Below are positions 27,956 through 52,274 of a DNA stretch of 64,000 nt, one piece after another. Position 1 is the first letter of the stretch. Every line of letters starts with the position of its first letter. Both the position numbers and the translations under genes were made by a program. The stretch lies in the sequence record NC_016571.1. One strand, 5' to 3'. A model generated the notes under the pieces. It did no database searches, had not been told where the DNA came from, and saw only the letters and a list, made by a program, of their open reading frames with translations.

Positions 27956-27977
27956 GAGAGGTCCGTTTGGACCTCTC
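27956..27977 (+). terminator. Hairpin terminator
   Basis: GAGAGGTCC gttt GGACCTCTC followed by TATGTTTGTTT. Confidence 0.65.
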
Positions 27978-28646: not shown

Positions 28647-28666
28647 CCCACTATTTCGGTAGTGGG
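28647..28666 (+). terminator. Rho-independent terminator
   Basis: CCCACTAT ttcg GTAGTGGG followed by TTTTCTTTC. Confidence 0.75.
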
Positions 28667-28694: not shown

Positions 28695-29307
28695 ATGTAC
28701 GAACAAGTTCGGTTGATCCCTGTATTCAACTCAACTACTGAGGATGTATTTGTTCCAACAATGGATTATCCTCCGTTCGAGTTTACTTACGGTAACAACG
28801 ATATCCTGGAGCGTCCCGATCTATTTTTCAAGTTACCTGAAAGTTGATGCCAATATCAACCTGCGTCATTTGGTATCCCTTGGTTCTGAGAAATGGGGCG
28901 TCAATGATCATATTGATTTGAGCCGTCTTTACATCAAAGGTGTTCTGATCAAAGTAACCAACGGTGATAAAGAAGAAGTATTGGAGCTGGATGGTCTGTT
29001 CGGCGTTGCTGGCACTGGTTTCCTCCCAGCTATCCATTCAAGTCATCAGGTGCGCAGAGCTTATCTGAGTATGAAGCATCTTGCAGCACGTTGTTTCAAA
29101 CGTCCTGACCGTTATCCCCCAACGATCTTCGGTAATGAAGAAGCTCCTAACATCACCTTCGAGTTAGGTCTCTGTTATGATGATCAACAGGGTGTTGTTG
29201 AGACCACCATTCACTCTGCAATGAGTAGCGTCAAGTCAGCTACCGTTAAAGTGATCGGATACATTCTGGATATTGAACACAAGTCTACGGACCTGAACCT
29301 TATTTAA
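28695..29307 (+). pseudogene. Family A gene split by a +1 frameshift in a T5 run (28824-28828); 203 aa if repaired
   Basis: ATG 28695 (AAGGT SD) encodes MYEQVRLIPVFNSTTEDVFVPTMDYPPF... and stops at 28847. The +1 frame continues FSSYLKVDANINL... to 29307. Both halves align with 20627-21145. Confidence 0.65.
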
Positions 29308-29344
29308 TCCGCCATTTTATGTCATCTATTGTTGAGGTCTCAAC

Positions 29345-31777
29345 ATGCAACTTGTAACTTGTGCGTTCCCTGGAACTGGTAAGTCTACCATTTCTAACAA
29401 CGCAGAACAATACGGGCTTATCAAAGCGCACGTCTATTATGATGACAGAGAAGGCGTTTGTGTCAGTCTCTTAAACTCTGATAAAGTTCCCGTATTTGAC
29501 TCGGACAGTTCAATCTTTCCGAAAGAAAACTTTCCGAGCAATTATGTAGAACACATCAAGGGACTCCTTCGAGATTTCCCCGAATGTGTTATCATGGTAT
29601 CAAGCCACGACAATGTCCGTGAGGCATTACGTGAAGCTGGTATCGACTATATCCTTGTTTATCCACAACGTGAACTCAAGGGTGATTACCTCGAACGCTA
29701 TGAAGGCCGTGGGTCTCCAGAACCGTTCATTAAACTGATGGATGATAAATGGAATGATTTCATTGACTCTTGTGAGTCGGATCCTTCCACATCCAAACGT
29801 GTACTATCCGAAGGGGAATATCTCGTGGATAAAATTGAAGAGTTGAAGAAGTTTTGGCCTGCTAAGAAAGTAGACGGGAATGAAGCTTTCCCAACTGCTG
29901 TCATTTCAGGTACCGAGTCAATTGGCGATATCGTCAGTGATGGTGAAGGTAATGCAGTAGCTGTCTGGGGTCAGAATGGTCTGGAACCATTACCTGCTGA
30001 TGACGGTGTTACCACTGGTGATGTCATCATCGACGGTGAAACTGGGCAGGTAGTTGGTACAGTAACTGAGGTTGAAGTAGAAGCCGAAGCTAAACCTGGC
30101 CAACCTGGTGTTACTGTAGAAGTAGAAACTGAAGTTCAGCCAGCTCCTGGCGTTTCTGCGGAACAAGTAGTTGAAGCAGTTGTAGCCGCTACTCCGTGCG
30201 AACCAGACAACGTTGATGTTGAAGTTAAACAAGACGGTACTGTTGTGGTGGAAGCTTCTGAAGTTATGCCTGCGGGCGAAGCTTCTGAAGTTGTTGCGGA
30301 AGTTGTTGGTGCTCAAGCTGATGCTCCAGAAACTGTAGTTGTTCAGCCTGCTGATGTAGTTGTTGAAGCAGAAGGTAGTTTTAACCCAACTGCTGCGATC
30401 TTCGCTGCTGCTCTGGGTGATAACCCTGCTCCTGAACCAACTGTGGCTCCTGGTCCTGCCATTGTTGATCTGGCAGAACTGAATGGTCCTGATACTCAGG
30501 TAGTCGTTGCTGCTGAAGAACCAACTGTAGCTGCCGTTGTCGTTGATGACGGTACTCTGACCTCCGAGGTTGTTAGCGTTCAGGCTGATCCTTCTGTTGC
30601 TCCTGTTTCTGGCGAAGTCATTGTTGACGGCCAAGAAGACGCAGGCGGTGAAGTGACTGTTGACGTCGATCCTAAAACCGGCGTAGTTGAAGTTGAAACC
30701 GCAGAAGGTACTGTTACTGTGACCCAAGAAGAAGTTAAAGTTGACGGTGCTGACATCGTTGTTACTGGTGCAGTTGAAGGCGACGACCTTGTTCAGACCG
30801 ATGCTGATCGTGCTGACCTGATTGAGCTGAAGCTGGACATGCAGAACGATATCGATGCTATCGAGCCTATCGTAGCTATGGGTAAAACGGAAGAGCATGC
30901 TGGTAATGAAGCATTTGCAGCCGGTTCCGAAATCTTAAACAAAGCAGCTGCTGAAGCCAAAGCAACTTACGGCATCGAAATGGAACCTACCCTAGCAGGT
31001 CTGGAAGGTTTCCTGGAAGGATTGAAAGGTGCAGTGGGTAAAATTACTGCCGCTCTGAAATCCAAGCCAACTAAACAGGATCTCTCTATCGTTAAGAAAT
31101 ATCTTTACGAGAATGAGAAAGCTGCTGCGGTTTATTCCAGTGCTGATTGGCAAGGTAAGCAAACCTTCATCGAAGGCGGTAACGTCACTGTACAAACCCC
31201 TGCTTTGCTGAGTAATGCTACCACTCCTTCTGAAGTGGCTGGTGTGGTAAACTCCATGTTGAAGAATGCTGAAGATGCTTTCAGTAAACATGTTAAGAAC
31301 GAAACTGAACGTCTTAAAGCCGGTGTGAAAGCTTTCAACGCTATTCGCAACCTGGGTAAAGATGCTCCGGTATCAGAGCTTGAAAAGCATCTACCTATCA
31401 AACCAGAAAAACTGACCTCGGGCGTAGCAGACGCTGGTCTGGATAAAGTAGAAGTTGGTTTGTCTGGCAAAGAGCTTCCAGTTCTGACTGCTGACAAAGT
31501 AAAAGAAGTTGTTAAGATCATGGATACCATTACTGATACGCTGGTTAAGTTTATCCGTATGGAAGAAAGCACTTTCGATCTCTATCCTGGTGATGAAGTC
31601 GAACGTTCTGCCTTTATCGAAGCGCATGAAAATACCGGTGCTGTTAAAGAACTGCTCAGCGTGATCGAGTACCGTTCAAGCCCAGTGTCCTTCACTGCTA
31701 TCGACAAAGCACTCCATGAAAAACTGCTTCCAATTGCACAGTTCTTGGAAAGCTGGATCCTCAAATCAGTTAAATAA
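29345..31777 (+). CDS. Internal head protein (phiKZ-type, protease-processed) with N-terminal P-loop NTPase and acidic linker
   Basis: AFPGTGKST Walker A; ~330-aa V/E/A/P/D-rich linker; G-x-E motifs; C-terminal domain paralogous to the next gene. Confidence 0.65.
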   Translation: MQLVTCAFPGTGKSTISNNAEQYGLIKAHVYYDDREGVCVSLLNSDKVPVFDSDSSIFPKENFPSNYVEHIKGLLRDFPECVIMVSSHDNVREALREAGIDYILVYPQRELKGDYLERYEGRGSPEPFIKLMDDKWNDFIDSCESDPSTSKRVLSEGEYLVDKIEELKKFWPAKKVDGNEAFPTAVISGTESIGDIVSDGEGNAVAVWGQNGLEPLPADDGVTTGDVIIDGETGQVVGTVTEVEVEAEAKPGQPGVTVEVETEVQPAPGVSAEQVVEAVVAATPCEPDNVDVEVKQDGTVVVEASEVMPAGEASEVVAEVVGAQADAPETVVVQPADVVVEAEGSFNPTAAIFAAALGDNPAPEPTVAPGPAIVDLAELNGPDTQVVVAAEEPTVAAVVVDDGTLTSEVVSVQADPSVAPVSGEVIVDGQEDAGGEVTVDVDPKTGVVEVETAEGTVTVTQEEVKVDGADIVVTGAVEGDDLVQTDADRADLIELKLDMQNDIDAIEPIVAMGKTEEHAGNEAFAAGSEILNKAAAEAKATYGIEMEPTLAGLEGFLEGLKGAVGKITAALKSKPTKQDLSIVKKYLYENEKAAAVYSSADWQGKQTFIEGGNVTVQTPALLSNATTPSEVAGVVNSMLKNAEDAFSKHVKNETERLKAGVKAFNAIRNLGKDAPVSELEKHLPIKPEKLTSGVADAGLDKVEVGLSGKELPVLTADKVKEVVKIMDTITDTLVKFIRMEESTFDLYPGDEVERSAFIEAHENTGAVKELLSVIEYRSSPVSFTAIDKALHEKLLPIAQFLESWILKSVK

Positions 31778-31787
31778 GGTAAACGTA

Positions 31788-33059
31788 ATGGAACTGAAAA
31801 ACATCGCTGACATCAAGAAAAAGATGCAGGGTGATATCGGAACCCTTACCAAAGTGATCTCCGCCTGTTCGCAGGCGGATACCCGCTCTGGTATGGAAGG
31901 CTATGAAGATGGCGGTAAAGTATTTACTGACGCCGCTAATCACTTCAAAACCCAATATGGTGTTTCCGTAGAACCTACCTTGGCTGGTATGGAATCTCTG
32001 GTTACTCAGCTGGCCACTGGTCTGAAGAAGATCGAAGATAAAGAAACTTCCGATGCTATTCTGACCCACATGTTAGTTGGGACTGAATCACGTAAGGCTG
32101 ATTTAGTATTGGCTCAAATACGTGGTACAAGTGATCTTCACGTCCTGACCTCGATGATCTCTAACCGTCAGGATGGTATCGACGGGATGGAAGATGGTGG
32201 TACTCACTTCGGCCACATGGTTTCTACCATTAAAGAACACTACGGTGTTGAAGTGGAACCCACGTTGTCCGGTCTGGAAAGTTTTAGCTCTGTTCTTAAA
32301 TCAGCAATCGGGAGCATTACTAACCTGATGAAAGGTAAGAATAAAGCAGAGAAAGCTCGTCTGATCAAACGTAACTTCGCTCAAGCAGAAGAAGCTGTTA
32401 AGCAATACGCTTCAGCTGAATGGCTGGGTAAGCGAGAGTACGTCGAAGATAAGACCGTTAAAGTCAAAACCCCGGCGGTCTTCAAAGATGTTAAGAACAT
32501 CTCCGATCTGATGGGTGTTGTCAATGGTATTCAGAAAGATGTTGATTCTGCGTTGGCCAAACATACGGCGGTTATCAATCAGCGCTTGACCGCTGGCCTG
32601 AAAGTATTCAATCAGTACGACAACAAAGATCCTGGTGATAAGGAAATTACAAAAGAGCTCGATGGTCTGGTAATTACCCCTCCTTATCTTAAAGGCGGTG
32701 TTGACGACTCCAAGCTGAAAGAAGTTAAACTCGGGACTTCTCCTGTTGAACTTCCGACGCTGGATGAAGCAGGTGTTAAATCCGCTGTGTCTGCTTTGGG
32801 TAAATTAATCGCTGGTATCCACACTCTGTGGGCGAAACTAGAAACCATAGATAGTAAGCTTCTGTATGAAGAGGATATCTATCAGTCCGATTTCTGGAAT
32901 AAAATGACTTCCGGTAAAGGTTTCGGTCAACTGTGGGATGCGGTCACTTATGACGCTGCCCGTGAAGTGAAAGAGATCGGGTTTGCCTACGACGACGTGG
33001 TACTCACCATTGCTCAGTTCATCGAAGGTTGGATGCTGGCTTCCATCAAGCACAACTAA
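31788..33059 (+). CDS. Internal head protein (phiKZ-type), paralog of the preceding C-terminal domain
   Basis: ATG 31788 with AAGGT SD; SGMEGY, AGMESL, DGMEDG and SGLESF motifs; ends IAQFIEGWMLASIK versus IAQFLESWILKSVK. Confidence 0.7.
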   Translation: MELKNIADIKKKMQGDIGTLTKVISACSQADTRSGMEGYEDGGKVFTDAANHFKTQYGVSVEPTLAGMESLVTQLATGLKKIEDKETSDAILTHMLVGTESRKADLVLAQIRGTSDLHVLTSMISNRQDGIDGMEDGGTHFGHMVSTIKEHYGVEVEPTLSGLESFSSVLKSAIGSITNLMKGKNKAEKARLIKRNFAQAEEAVKQYASAEWLGKREYVEDKTVKVKTPAVFKDVKNISDLMGVVNGIQKDVDSALAKHTAVINQRLTAGLKVFNQYDNKDPGDKEITKELDGLVITPPYLKGGVDDSKLKEVKLGTSPVELPTLDEAGVKSAVSALGKLIAGIHTLWAKLETIDSKLLYEEDIYQSDFWNKMTSGKGFGQLWDAVTYDAAREVKEIGFAYDDVVLTIAQFIEGWMLASIKHN

Positions 33060-33078
33060 GTAAATCTGTAACTAATCT

Positions 33079-33102
33079 GGGTATAGGCTAACCCCTATAC
33101 CC
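33079..33102 (+). terminator. Hairpin terminator
   Basis: GGGTATAGG ctaacc CCTATACCC followed by ATTTT. Confidence 0.65.
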
Positions 33103-33191
33103 ATTTTGCTGTCTGTTGAAATTTTGCCACCTGCTTTAGCCGGACCAATAACGGTACCCGCAAAGCACACGCATATATAAGGAAGTAGTAA

Positions 33192-34577: not shown

Positions 34578-34605
34578 CCCTACTCTCCTTAACCGGAGAG
34601 TAGGG
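34578..34605 (+). terminator. Hairpin terminator
   Basis: CCCTACTCTCC ttaacc GGAGAGTAGGG flanked by ACATA and TTATG. Confidence 0.7.
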
Positions 34606-51452: not shown

Positions 51453-52274
51453 ATGTTTGATTTCTTCAGACCTAAACCGATAAGTAAAAAGAAGCTCTTT
51501 GAGATTCATCATGGAACAACACGTTCCGTGATTCTCTTTCATAAGTGGGCAATTAAAATTCCTCACTTGAAATCATATAAGGGGTTCCTTAAGGGACTCC
51601 TTGCTAATATGACTGAACGGTCCATTTGGCATTGTTGTCCTAACTACTTTCTTCCGGTCATCTGGTCTATGCCATTGGGTCTGGTAGTGGTTATGCCGCG
51701 TGTCAAAGCAACCAAACAGGTTACTTGGTATTTACATGCGTTCATGGCCGATTTATTTCATGCTAACAACGATGATAACGATGAAGCCCTTAATGCAAGG
51801 CGGTATTGCGAATACATCCCAAGTAATGTGGCGATGTATAAAGGTAAACCCGTTTGTATTGATTATGGTACCTATATTCACCCCGACGTCACGGAAAAGG
51901 AACTAGACGGGGAGATGTATTATTTAAAGTTAAAGACCAGAAACCTCGTAGAGGAAAAGTTTGGTCCTCAGGACTGGAGTCATTATGGAAACCAAGAAAA
52001 TATTCTCGTTGTACAAGAATCCGCTGAGGTATGTTTGGAGCTATTGGATATTCCAACATTTACCGCTAATGTGGAAAGTAAGGATCGCAAACTTCCACAT
52101 GGATTACTGGCAATGGAAAAGGCAAACGAAGGATCGGTTATTCGGGTCTCTCGGCGTGGTAGTGCTCCAGGAAGTGAATCCCTGGGGGACAATAACGTTA
52201 TCCCACGGAACGTTCCGACTCAGAGACGTCCGATACCGGTTGAAGCGATCCAAACTACCGTGGTACTCAACTAA
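51453..52274 (+). CDS. Protein-kinase-like fold protein with altered catalytic loop
   Basis: GTTRSV...WAIKIP (beta3 Lys), ANMTE (alphaC Glu), VVVMPRV, EYIPSN loop, V.IDYG. ATG 51453 with GGGGAG SD. Confidence 0.6.
   Translation: MFDFFRPKPISKKKLFEIHHGTTRSVILFHKWAIKIPHLKSYKGFLKGLLANMTERSIWHCCPNYFLPVIWSMPLGLVVVMPRVKATKQVTWYLHAFMADLFHANNDDNDEALNARRYCEYIPSNVAMYKGKPVCIDYGTYIHPDVTEKELDGEMYYLKLKTRNLVEEKFGPQDWSHYGNQENILVVQESAEVCLELLDIPTFTANVESKDRKLPHGLLAMEKANEGSVIRVSRRGSAPGSESLGDNNVIPRNVPTQRRPIPVEAIQTTVVLN

Follow-up and report, generated by a model that had tools for sequence, protein, structure and literature searches.

A P-loop kinase-fold domain fused in front of a candidate head-protein precursor in Pseudomonas phage OBP

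The gp161 protein of Pseudomonas phage OBP combines three parts in one reading frame: a kinase-fold domain (aa 1-172), a 309-aa acidic linker and a C-terminal domain. From comparisons of its sequence we tentatively read it as a polyprotein precursor of the phage head that would be loaded into the prohead and cut by the head protease, an explanation that is quite possible, if short of probable. Computation establishes how the domains are arranged, that the N-terminal one has a kinase fold, that the fusion and three candidate cleavage sites are conserved, and that an extended cleavage motif is associated with virion proteins. An earlier note on this DNA had described the same arrangement and proposed that the propeptide carries a nucleotide-binding enzyme into the prohead as cargo; its observation is confirmed and its interpretation is partly supported. 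The heads of giant phiKZ-like phages contain dozens of packed proteins, many of which are ejected.

Results

The window analysed here is a 64,000-nucleotide stretch of record NC_016571.1. Its open reading frame 29345-31777 (+ strand) is 100% identical to OBP_161 (JN627160, coordinates 153345-155777), which encodes 810 aa and carries the product name "hypothetical protein" in the deposited record. The frame is uninterrupted over its whole length, in agreement with the earlier claim that no internal stop splits the parts. Nor does a Shine-Dalgarno-start separate them: a scan of in-frame starts near the domain borders found none plausible, the sole candidate being a weak GTG at codon 564, and the idea of a separate C-domain product made from an internal translation start was dropped. 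An assembly join between the domains, which the note had named as a hazard, is excluded by the recurrence of the fusion: it is present in 10 phage genomes or contigs independent of one another, and 22 of the 43 cluster representatives have it.

Two terminator-like hairpins bracket gp161 and its neighbors, and a late-type promoter-like motif precedes the gene (Table 1). Motifs of the form [TG]TTATG lie upstream of 12 of 30 OBP virion genes versus 14 of 143 other genes (P 2e-4), a difference that is weak evidence for any single gene. A sigma-70 promoter scan gave fewer matches than shuffled sequence and was uninformative. The gene is surrounded by a conserved block for DNA metabolism (SbcC, ligase, RNase H, HTH regulators), not by a head-gene cluster.

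Table 1. Features of the gp161 region, in window positions. A slash marks a predicted cut.
Feature	Position	Strand	Remarks
Terminator-like hairpin	28647..28666	+	After RNase H gene OBP_158; upstream edge of gp159/160-gp161-gp162 unit
Promoter-like motif ATTTTATG, late/virion-type [T/G]TTATG	29314..29321	+	24-28 nt 5' of gp161 start codon
P-loop kinase-fold domain, aa 1-172	29345..29860	+	phrog_4182 match, invariant residues, AF2 model, fold searches
Conserved short linear element, aa 182-217	29888..29995	+	F-P-T-A-V-I-S-G-T-E/S-I-G-D ... N-G-L-E-P-L-P; conserved in orthologs
Predicted cut 1, after E191 (GTE)	29909-29917	+	Within aa 182-217 element
Acidic low-complexity linker, aa 192-481	29918..30787	+	V/A/E/G/D/T/P-rich
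Pro-region module, aa 482-554	30788..31006	+	Helical hairpin (AF2), two conserved G-x-E sites
Predicted cut 2, A-G-N-E/A-F, after E522	30902-30910	+	Pro-region module
Predicted cut 3, E-P-T-L-A-G-L-E/G-F, after E554	30998-31006	+	Pro-region module
Predicted mature C-terminal domain, aa 555-810, 27.8 kDa, mostly helical	31007..31777	+	Stop codon follows; AF2 pLDDT 93.8
OBP_162, 423 aa, paralog of gp161 pro-module and C-domain	31788..33059	+	Pro-module duplicated; G-x-E at aa 35, 67, 133, 162
Terminator-like hairpin	33078..33103	+	After OBP_162; downstream edge of gp159/160-gp161-gp162 unit

Judged by its structure model, the N-terminal part of gp161 is a real P-loop kinase-fold domain. The Walker A sequence AFPGTGKST, already recognized in the earlier reading, lies at aa 7-15 and falls within an [A/G]xxxxGK[S/T] pattern conserved across the kinase-domain alignment, which also reveals conservation of D52-S-D54-S-S after strand 2, of S86/H88/R92 and of the lid-like R118/R122. 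We take the acidic motif after strand 2 to resemble the D-x-D of shikimate and gluconate kinases. The phrog_4182 profile matches aa 3-167 (E 9.3e-52). The AF2 model (pLDDT 91) retrieves many kinases with probability 1.0 in Foldseek, and VIA aligns it with AK6/hCINAP, gluconate, shikimate and polynucleotide kinases (Z 8.0-9.6, 137-148 aligned residues); Walker A thus sits in a five-stranded parallel-sheet kinase fold with a lid. Pfam and NCBIfam contain no model that exceeds threshold for any part of gp161, and a PDB sequence search gave no significant match to a solved structure for any part. The 'B domain'/protein A matches from that search are meaningless, being repeated tag sequences that match one helix.

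Every fusion keeps the catalytic-type residues without change, and on the strength of this conservation the kinase, whose domain has its only OBP copy in gp161, looks functional. Depositors have named orthologs 'kinase' or 'polynucleotide kinase'. The latter label, given to the Kc263 ortholog, is unproven, because gp161 does not match the polynucleotide kinase family model (T4 Pnk / bacterial Pnkp; Pfam AAA_33), lacks a phosphatase domain, and has the Clostridium thermocellum polynucleotide kinase as just one of many tied fold matches (VIA Z 8.0). Our leading guess for the phosphate acceptor is the 5'-OH of a nucleic acid, or a nucleotide, since stand-alone copies of the kinase directly follow the NAD-dependent DNA ligase gene.

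The six G-x-E triplets listed in the earlier note, GNE178 (29876), GTE189 (29909), GLE212 (29978), GQE429 (30629), GNE520 (30902) and GLE552 (30998), are all present. The virion proteins of OBP show no enrichment of bare G-x-E (ratio 1.23), and therefore the list alone is not significant. As candidate cut sites, the triplets at 189, 520 and 552 hold up through conservation, and those at 178, 189, 520 and 552 fit an extended motif, G-x-E-[S/G/A]-[F/L/I/M]; GLE212 and GQE429 are probably not cut, because Pro follows the former and the latter lies in an unconserved stretch. The extended motif was defined after gp161, gp162 and some internal head proteins had been seen; matches in other virion proteins are independent. 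It occurs 30 times in the 26,788 aa of virion-annotated OBP proteins versus 9 times in 61,062 aa of other proteins, a 7.6x higher density, and the 9 copies equal the shuffle expectation. At least two copies are found in 9 of 52 virion proteins versus 0 of 246 others, and gp161 and gp162 are the only OBP proteins without virion annotation that have as many. Shuffling gives gp161, with four copies (178, 189, 520, 552), a mean expectation of 0.25 (P = 2.5e-4), and assigns P 0.007 to the two copies of gp162. Only G is strongly enriched at the first motif position, the virion:other counts being 30:9 for G, 8:6 for A and 8:7 for S, with other residues near or below parity. Carriers of the motif include the major capsid protein, the portal, the PF12699 internal head proteins gp109-113 and gp262, and a virion RNA polymerase subunit.

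The phiKZ-type prohead protease that the cleavage idea presupposes is encoded by OBP: gp283 matches phrog_3014, 'head maturation protease' (E 7.7e-75), and carries the extended motif in its C-terminal tail. PF03420, the T4 gp21 protease model, has no match in OBP. The sites ending in E191, E522 and E554 are conserved across 10 orthologs, those of the pro-module in 8-10 of the 10, and in nearly all of the 43 family representatives the last one lies immediately before the conserved domain; stand-alone C-domain members have a G-x-E site at about residue 70. As in S80 substrates, [S/A/G]-x-E in gp161 is N-terminal to the mature domain and in head-protein context, with the reservation that the motif was partly defined on the query.

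The first conserved site belongs to a short element (aa 182-217) similar to the leaders with which OBP internal head proteins begin. Its I-S-G-T-E-S hexapeptide recurs at aa 10-15 of the internal head protein gp112, and some orthologs have the element in repeated form. N-terminal G-x-E leaders are found in 7 of 52 OBP virion proteins versus 3 of 248 others, and the leader-like site logic extends to phages AH04, Survivor and N1M2. The low-complexity stretch described earlier is borne out by composition: aa 173-481 are V 22%, A 13%, E 12%, G 10%, D 8%, T 8% and P 7%, with a net charge of -58, and aa 192-481 include 4 Lys and no Arg. Linkers range in length from about 40 to >400 aa among orthologs and are otherwise unalignable; that of gp161 contains many additional [S/A/G]-x-E triplets.

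The paralogy of the C-terminal part with the next gene was correctly seen: gp161 aa 482-810 and OBP_162 share 31% identity (E 2e-41), and in the C-domain tree OBP_162 is sister to an OBP-type fusion. The claim that this part is an internal head protein fares worse. Neither gp161 nor gp162 matches PF12699 (phiKZ_IP), which a six-frame scan of the whole OBP genome places only at record positions 91.4-96.2 kb, 237 kb and 71 kb. In hhalign the C-domain family scores 70% (E 4e-5) with OBP PF12699 proteins over only ~70 columns, corresponding to the two-site pro-module; by this comparison the cleavage module is all that they share. A weak ESM Atlas lead connects the C-domain to PF12699 (score 0.82). 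Fold searches with the C-domain (Foldseek against PDB, VIA wide) returned only generic helical hairpins (Z <= 7.2). Matches in BFVD are to jumbo-phage (phiKZ-like) proteins, several of them named virion structural protein. With the C-domain as query, IMG/VR yielded no relatives and a word-based protein search just two.

Fusions occur in at least 10 phage genomes, and the C-domains of the family representatives have diverged to 26-47% identity. The kinase also exists as a separate gene, which the earlier note had thought worth checking: it stands free in Aeromonas phages PS1 and PS2, where it starts 1-2 nt after the ligase gene, and in T4-like phages. In PS2 the C-domain has a gene of its own.

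Discussion

The C-terminal half of gp161 (aa 482-810) has the design of a phiKZ-type head-protein precursor, namely a mature domain behind a pro-region of ~70 aa that has two G-x-E sites, and we infer from it the loading, cutting, retention and ejection of the gp161 parts. One could envision that this half brings the entire polypeptide into the prohead, where gp283 would cut after E191, E522 and E554, and probably after other linker Glu residues. The products would be a folded P-loop kinase of 21.6 kDa (aa 1-191), the acidic linker, which would probably be broken down, a peptide of 3 kDa and the 27.8-kDa mature C-domain. The kinase might then stay in the head, because a folded domain of this mass, unlike small propeptide fragments, should be too large to get out through the shell, and it might be ejected together with the DNA when the phage infects.

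Several observations point to such a polyprotein: the association of the motif with virion and head proteins, the conservation of the sites, the leader-like element, the late-type TTTATG motif at -28 (29316-29321), the remote similarity to PF12699 in hhalign and, weakly, in the ESM Atlas, the BFVD fold matches to virion structural proteins and a kinase domain that looks functional. Others point away from it. The gene lies in a DNA-metabolism block, the C-domain fails PF12699, the extended motif was defined with gp161 and gp162 in view, and the propeptide would far exceed the about 254 aa to which known ones in the phiKZ-like group extend. In the deposited record 53 OBP proteins are labelled virion, and gp161 and gp162 are each a 'hypothetical protein'. 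The study behind the OBP annotation (Cornelissen et al. 2012) reportedly included virion mass spectrometry; tryptic peptides of the Lys-rich C-domain should be readily seen by this method. No virion mass spectrometry is reported in the paper on the relative ZPAH34, and the N1M2 paper never mentions mass spectrometry. The kinase is free-standing in PS1, PS2 and T4-like phages, and therefore its basic job needs no capsid.

An alternative view is that gp161 never enters the head and acts inside the cell as a nucleic-acid or nucleotide kinase of the replication-repair block, its C-domain being a localisation or interaction module and its G-x-E sites owing their conservation to something other than proteolysis. 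The synteny that all relatives preserve with the genes for DNA ligase, RNase H and SbcC, the near-contact of kinase and ligase genes in PS1 and PS2, the names under which orthologs were deposited and the missing virion label all fit an intracellular enzyme. We nevertheless consider it unlikely, for it leaves unexplained why, outside the annotated virion proteins, gp161 and gp162 are the sole carriers of at least two motif copies, why the pro-region of stand-alone C-domain proteins is like that of head proteins and has its site near residue 70, why a leader-like element follows the kinase domain, and why the C-domain fold matches virion structural proteins. An accident of gene loss, in which a kinase gene and a head-protein gene lost the genes that had separated them and were joined with no functional coupling of the two parts, would suit the coexistence of split, kinase-only and C-domain-only states in one syntenic block of Aeromonas jumbo phages. 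It is hard to reconcile with the retention of the fusion in 22 of 43 representatives despite the divergence of the C-domains, with a conserved site-bearing element exactly at the junction, and with at least six changes of the label 'fused' on the C-domain tree, part of which are due to tandem duplicates such as gp162. Such an accident strikes us as quite improbable.

Loading and cutting might also take place without delivery. The kinase and linker would then be a propeptide that is disposable or serves during assembly, whether as a bulky acidic spacer, by filling the prohead core like a scaffold or by acting in the cytoplasm ahead of loading, and would end up degraded or expelled. Acidic propeptides are common in the phiKZ-like phage group, the highly variable linker length is what a spacer would be expected to show, and the abundance of [S/A/G]-x-E triplets in the linker is in keeping with this fate. 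Propeptides of phiKZ, SPN3US and T4 are normally cut at several places and exit the head (PMC10052503). Strictly conserved catalytic-type residues, however, argue for an active enzyme and not a filler, the position of E191 right behind the folded domain suggests release of that domain intact, and a folded 21.6-kDa domain should not pass the capsid pores. On these grounds we rate a discarded kinase as rather improbable.

Returning to the prohead-loaded polyprotein, it is tempting to speculate on a general arrangement, somewhat unlikely as a whole, in which the capsids of OBP-like jumbo phages receive a P-loop kinase because it is tethered, by way of an acidic linker, in front of an internal head-protein precursor; the head protease would free it at leader-like G-x-E sites, and it would be injected with the genome to act at the very start of infection. 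Possible early roles are the healing of 5'-OH ends together with the phage ligase, or the countering of a host nuclease defence. We know of no propeptide of the phiKZ-like group that holds a folded enzyme, and this kinase would be the first one known inside the propeptide of a phiKZ-type head protein. It would mean that an enzyme can be loaded by fusion upstream of an existing head-protein precursor if flanked by leader-like protease sites, and foreign proteins could perhaps be put into jumbo-phage capsids by the same design rule. Independently of the fate of gp161, the analysis yields a candidate rule for the OBP protease (G-x-E, then a small residue, then a hydrophobic one) which flags gp161, gp162 and perhaps gp116 and gp120 as unannotated candidate head proteins, and it draws attention to phrog_4182 as a widespread, uncharacterised phage kinase family tied to DNA ligase genes.

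The closest counterparts of the kinase domain are stand-alone phrog_4182 proteins such as Acj133p029 of Acinetobacter phage 133 and PS2_0143 of Aeromonas phage PS2. They are 46-56% identical to it over the whole domain and keep its conserved residues; unlike gp161, they are free proteins of 150-190 aa without linker, G-x-E module or C-domain. With the AK-like P-loop kinases (AK6/hCINAP, gluconate and shikimate kinases, C. thermocellum and fungal polynucleotide/RNA kinases) gp161 has in common the fold, Walker A and the acidic motif after strand 2, and no single family stands out among its fold matches. T4 Pnk has a phosphatase domain, whereas gp161 has none.

For the processing, the nearest model is provided by the head and ejection proteins of phiKZ, 201phi2-1 and SPN3US and their S80 protease (phiKZ gp175, SPN3US gp245), whose family is represented in OBP by gp283. 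Auto-cleavage of the protease tail together with N-terminal propeptides is the known pattern in phiKZ and SPN3US (PMC5694885, PMC10052503). Motifs in these phages, as in OBP, have Glu as their last residue and a small one two positions earlier, and several sites per propeptide precede the conserved mature domain, as in gp161. Short leaders have a parallel too: phiKZ gp93 is cut at SLE-13 (PMC5694885), and OBP gp110-112 have G-x-E at residues 12-14. The first motif position is Ala in SPN3US (PMC5694885), whereas OBP seems to prefer Gly. Known propeptides of the phiKZ-like group reach only about 254 aa, the longest of SPN3US (PMC10052503), whereas the part removed from gp161 would measure 554 aa and, unlike those propeptides, contains a folded conserved kinase domain. 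Internal head proteins of the phiKZ type belong to PF12699, of which the gp161 C-domain is not a member.

In concept, the predicted cargo is reminiscent of Alt and the internal proteins of T4, which are loaded into the prohead, trimmed after Glu by gp21 and injected with the DNA. The likeness lies in a packaged enzyme, trimming at Glu and delivery, and involves no sequence relationship to gp161. Each T4 cargo protein has a short N-terminal capsid-targeting peptide, whereas the OBP enzyme would ride on the N-terminus of a head protein by way of a 300-aa tether.

Architecture of the gp161 fusion protein

OBP_161, deposited as 'hypothetical protein' in the 284,757-bp genome of the phiKZ-related jumbo Pseudomonas phage OBP (JN627160), runs for 810 codons without interruption. 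An earlier note had described its product, gp161, as an NTPase and an acidic linker fused in front of an internal head protein, and its parts are borne out: the Walker A sequence AFPGTGKST lies at aa 7-15; the linker comprises 309 aa (aa 173-481; V 22%, A 13%, E 12%, G 10%) with a net charge of -58, aa 192-481 containing four Lys and no Arg; and aa 482-810 are paralogous to the product of the next gene, gp162 (31% identity, E 2e-41). All six G-x-E triplets were found at exactly the nucleotides reported, and no plausible internal start occurs near the domain borders. The fusion is not an assembly artefact, since it recurs in Pantoea phage Survivor, Erwinia AH04, Serratia Yubaba, Edwardsiella pEt-SU, Shewanella SXP01, Klebsiella N1M2, Kosakonia Kc263 and Aeromonas LAh10, and in a 172-kb metagenomic contig. 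Depositors named the orthologs inconsistently; we found no family match backing 'protease', 'kinase' or 'polynucleotide kinase'.

Features of OBP and its relatives (window positions unless a record or locus is named; OBP record coordinate = window coordinate + 124,000)
Feature	Position	Remark
OBP_161	29345-31777	kinase-linker-C-domain fusion
G-x-E triplets of gp161	29876, 29909, 29978, 30629, 30902, 30998	aa 178, 189, 212, 429, 520, 552
gp162 aa 1-165	31788-32290	two pro-modules
OBP_160	28750-29307	small gene directly upstream of gp161
Hairpins bounding gp159/160, gp161, gp162	28647-28666, 33078-33103	terminator-like
Hairpins followed directly by (T/G)TTATG or CTATG	27956-27977, 34578-34605	terminator-like
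Same pairing	record 92.6-96.3 kb	between gp109 and gp113
OBP_197	51453-52274	273 aa, 'hypothetical'
OBP_116	G000:C1:98464-99303	'hypothetical', motif at aa 21
OBP_120	G000:C1:103170-103808	'hypothetical', motif at aa 51
gp283	G000:C1:267472-268323	head maturation protease, outside window
Survivor ortholog	L002 4001-6337	named 'protease'
AH04 ortholog	L003 4001-6151	named 'kinase'
Kc263 ortholog	L020 3001-4674	named 'polynucleotide kinase'
OBP_160 counterpart	L014:7352-7987	precedes fusion
PS2_0143	L031 1032-1538	separate kinase gene
PS1_0146	L013 5001-5507	separate kinase gene

The only family match of the N-terminal domain is PHROG 4182 (function unknown; E 9e-52); Pfam, NCBIfam and PDB sequence searches gave nothing significant. 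Stand-alone homologs of about 150-190 aa exist in many phages, the T4-like Acinetobacter phage 133 among them, the closest being 46-56% identical; OBP itself has the single copy in gp161. Conserved residues are G12/K13 of the P-loop, D52 with S53-D54-S55-S56, P64/N66/Y67, S86/H88/R92 and K112/R118/R122. The D-S-D after strand 2 is reminiscent of the D-x-D found in shikimate and gluconate kinases. A confident AlphaFold2 model built from the homolog alignment (pLDDT 91) resembles many P-loop kinases about equally: AK6/hCINAP (Z 9.6, 144 aligned residues, rmsd 3.4), gluconate kinase (8.7), fungal tRNA-ligase kinase (8.7), shikimate kinase (8.6) and Clostridium thermocellum polynucleotide kinase (8.0). 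Conserved residues and model thus uphold the P-loop NTPase; as modelled, the domain has a kinase fold and its conserved residues form an active-site-like constellation, though neither a specific family nor a substrate can be assigned to it.

The C-terminal domain (C-domain) belongs to a family of which a profile search, run on 1.84 billion representatives, found only 43 members. Kinase fusions make up 22 of them, the C-domain always coming last, and most of the non-fused members stand alone, with lengths of about 310-360 aa. Its model (pLDDT 93.8) is mostly helical, and fold searches found no PDB counterpart. In a viral fold library it matches its own family first and then proteins of other phiKZ-like jumbo phages (E 1e-7 to 5e-3, with low TM scores), several of them named 'virion structural protein' (Noxifer, Psa21, PhiEaH1, 201phi2-1). 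A Pfam search gave neither gp161 nor gp162 a match to PF12699, the phiKZ-type internal head protein family, whose OBP genes lie elsewhere (gp109-112, gp262, gp089). Profile-profile comparison of the C-domain family with these proteins yielded 70% probability and E 4e-5 over about 70 columns only, comprising two G-x-E sites with a helix between them and then a Lys-rich helix. 'Internal head protein' is reasonable as a functional label; the searches do not establish membership of PF12699. In gp162, two tandem copies of a roughly 95-aa pro-module (G-M-E-...-Y-G-V-x-V-E-P-T-L-x-G-x-E-S) place four candidate cut sites ahead of the mature domain.

A probable cleavage motif in OBP virion proteins

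Bare G-x-E is not enriched in OBP virion proteins (virion/non-virion ratio 1.23). The extended motif G-x-E-[S/G/A]-[F/L/I/M], chosen after inspection of gp161, gp162 and some internal head proteins, occurs 30 times in the 26,788 residues of the 52 proteins labelled as virion by the depositors (at least two copies in nine), as against 9 times, the shuffle expectation, in the 61,062 residues of 246 others (at least two copies in none). There are four copies in the 810 residues of gp161 (shuffle mean 0.25, P 2.5e-4) and two in gp162 (P 0.007; 447 residues in the longest ORF, 423 annotated). Other carriers are gp089 and gp109-113. Hits independent of the choice of motif are those in the major capsid protein (aa 40, 88), portal (aa 175, 217), virion RNA polymerase subunit gp278 (aa 14), gp009, gp102, gp262, gp265 and the head maturation protease gp283 (phrog_3014, E 8e-75). 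The C-terminal tail of gp283 has two G-x-E-[SA]-[FL] motifs (aa 204, 249), which fit the C-terminal auto-cleavage reported for its SPN3US homolog gp245.

The proteases of phiKZ, 201phi2-1 and SPN3US cleave [S/A/G]-x-E or A-x-E behind the Glu, remove N-terminal head propeptides of 20-254 aa by several cuts and are themselves auto-cleaved C-terminally (PMC5694885, PMC10052503). The distribution of the extended motif among OBP virion proteins agrees with this known cleavage. When the first residue was varied, virion:other counts were 30:9 for G, 8:6 for A and 8:7 for S, the rest being near parity or below; from these counts, the OBP protease seems to prefer Gly. SPN3US uses A-x-E and phiKZ S/A/G-x-E, whereas the OBP motif favours Gly, and head protease specificity appears to have drifted among jumbo-phage lineages. 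OBP_116 and OBP_120, each with one extended motif close to its N-terminus and located in the head-gene cluster, are candidate unannotated substrates. OBP_197 has G-S-E-S-L-G-D near its C-terminus (aa 240), similar to the S-G-T-E-S-I-G-D element of gp161.

When ten fusion orthologs are aligned, their linkers of about 40 to 330 aa give essentially no alignment apart from three elements. Directly behind the kinase lie one or two copies of F-P-T-A-(V/I)-I-S-G-(T/N)-E-S-I-G-D ... N-G-L-E-P-L-P; the second element is A-G-x-E-(A/G)-(F/Y)-x-D-G. The third, E-P-T-L-A-G-(L/M)-E-(G/S)-F, is present in all ten and immediately precedes the conserved domain in nearly all 43 representatives, at about residue 70 in stand-alone proteins, a typical propeptide size. 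The first element is similar to the N-terminal leaders of OBP internal head proteins, such as M-S-F-K-D-L-F-S-G-I-S-G-T-E-S of gp112. Of 52 virion proteins, 7 have such a leader, defined by G-x-E-[SGA] within residues 6-26, as against 3 of 248 others (P 2.6e-4), and PF12699 proteins of AH04, Survivor and N1M2 follow the same logic of leader and site. With its leader-like element and conserved sites, gp161 beyond residue 175 has the appearance of an entire head-protein precursor to which a kinase has been added in front. The six sites proposed earlier fare unequally: 189, 520 and 552 are conserved and well supported; 178 fits the extended motif and is conserved in close relatives only; 212, with Pro directly after the triplet, and 429 are unlikely to be cut.

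Gene neighbourhood and split states

The conserved block around the fusion comprises, in this order, SbcC, transglycosylase, NAD-dependent DNA ligase, RNase H, the fusion, gp162 or a gp163-like gene, and HTH regulators; the setting is one of DNA metabolism rather than a cluster of head genes. Within the terminator-bounded unit of gp161, OBP_160 has no family match; its counterpart in a relative is 24% identical (E 1e-12). TTTATG stands 24-28 nt 5' of the gp161 start. In OBP, [T/G]TTATG precedes 40% of virion genes and 10% of others (P 2e-4), a mild hint of late expression for this one gene. The pairing of hairpin and hexamer or CTATG recurs and has the look of 'terminator plus late promoter' punctuation.

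The earlier note had proposed checking whether the NTPase is a separate gene in relatives, and in some it is: in Aeromonas phage PS2 it is 51% identical and lies directly behind the ligase gene, with the C-domain protein encoded separately 7.5 kb downstream. Within this block PS1 carries the kinase alone; by tblastn, ZPAH34 and pAEv1810 have the C-domain without the kinase. These split states indicate that kinase and C-domain are independent modules. The PS2 and PS1 kinase genes start 1-2 nt past the ligase stop, which suggests that kinase and ligase are coupled in translation or function. On the C-domain tree (root unknown), fused members are scattered among unfused ones, with at least six changes. 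There, gp162 is sister to an OBP-type fusion; judged by this position, it is a recent tandem duplicate of a gp161-type C-terminal half.

Possible fate of the kinase

Most economically, gp161 and gp162 can be read as substrates of the OBP head protease that had escaped annotation. Cuts after E191, E522 and E554 would yield a 21.6-kDa kinase, a 33-kDa acidic linker (with numerous additional [S/A/G]-x-E triplets), a 3-kDa peptide and a 27.8-kDa mature domain. Entry of gp161 into the prohead and its cutting are probable in our estimate. Should both occur, retention or ejection of the kinase would be favoured, with slightly less assurance. Because the full cargo model needs both steps, it is tentative, at somewhat under an even chance. 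The main evidence against it is that the deposited record gives neither gp161 nor gp162 a virion label. The gene neighbourhood and free-standing homologs also show that the enzyme can work outside the capsid. Our literature search found no experiment on a member of the family.

If gp161 is indeed a protease substrate, the scheme would work like that of the head and ejection proteins with propeptides in phiKZ and SPN3US; in concept it would also resemble T4 Alt and the internal proteins of T4. It would differ from the phiKZ and SPN3US cases in that the removed part amounts to 554 aa, where the longest known has about 254 aa, and contains a conserved folded enzyme, and in that the predicted release site is an N-terminal leader copied to an internal position; these differences are read entirely from sequence.
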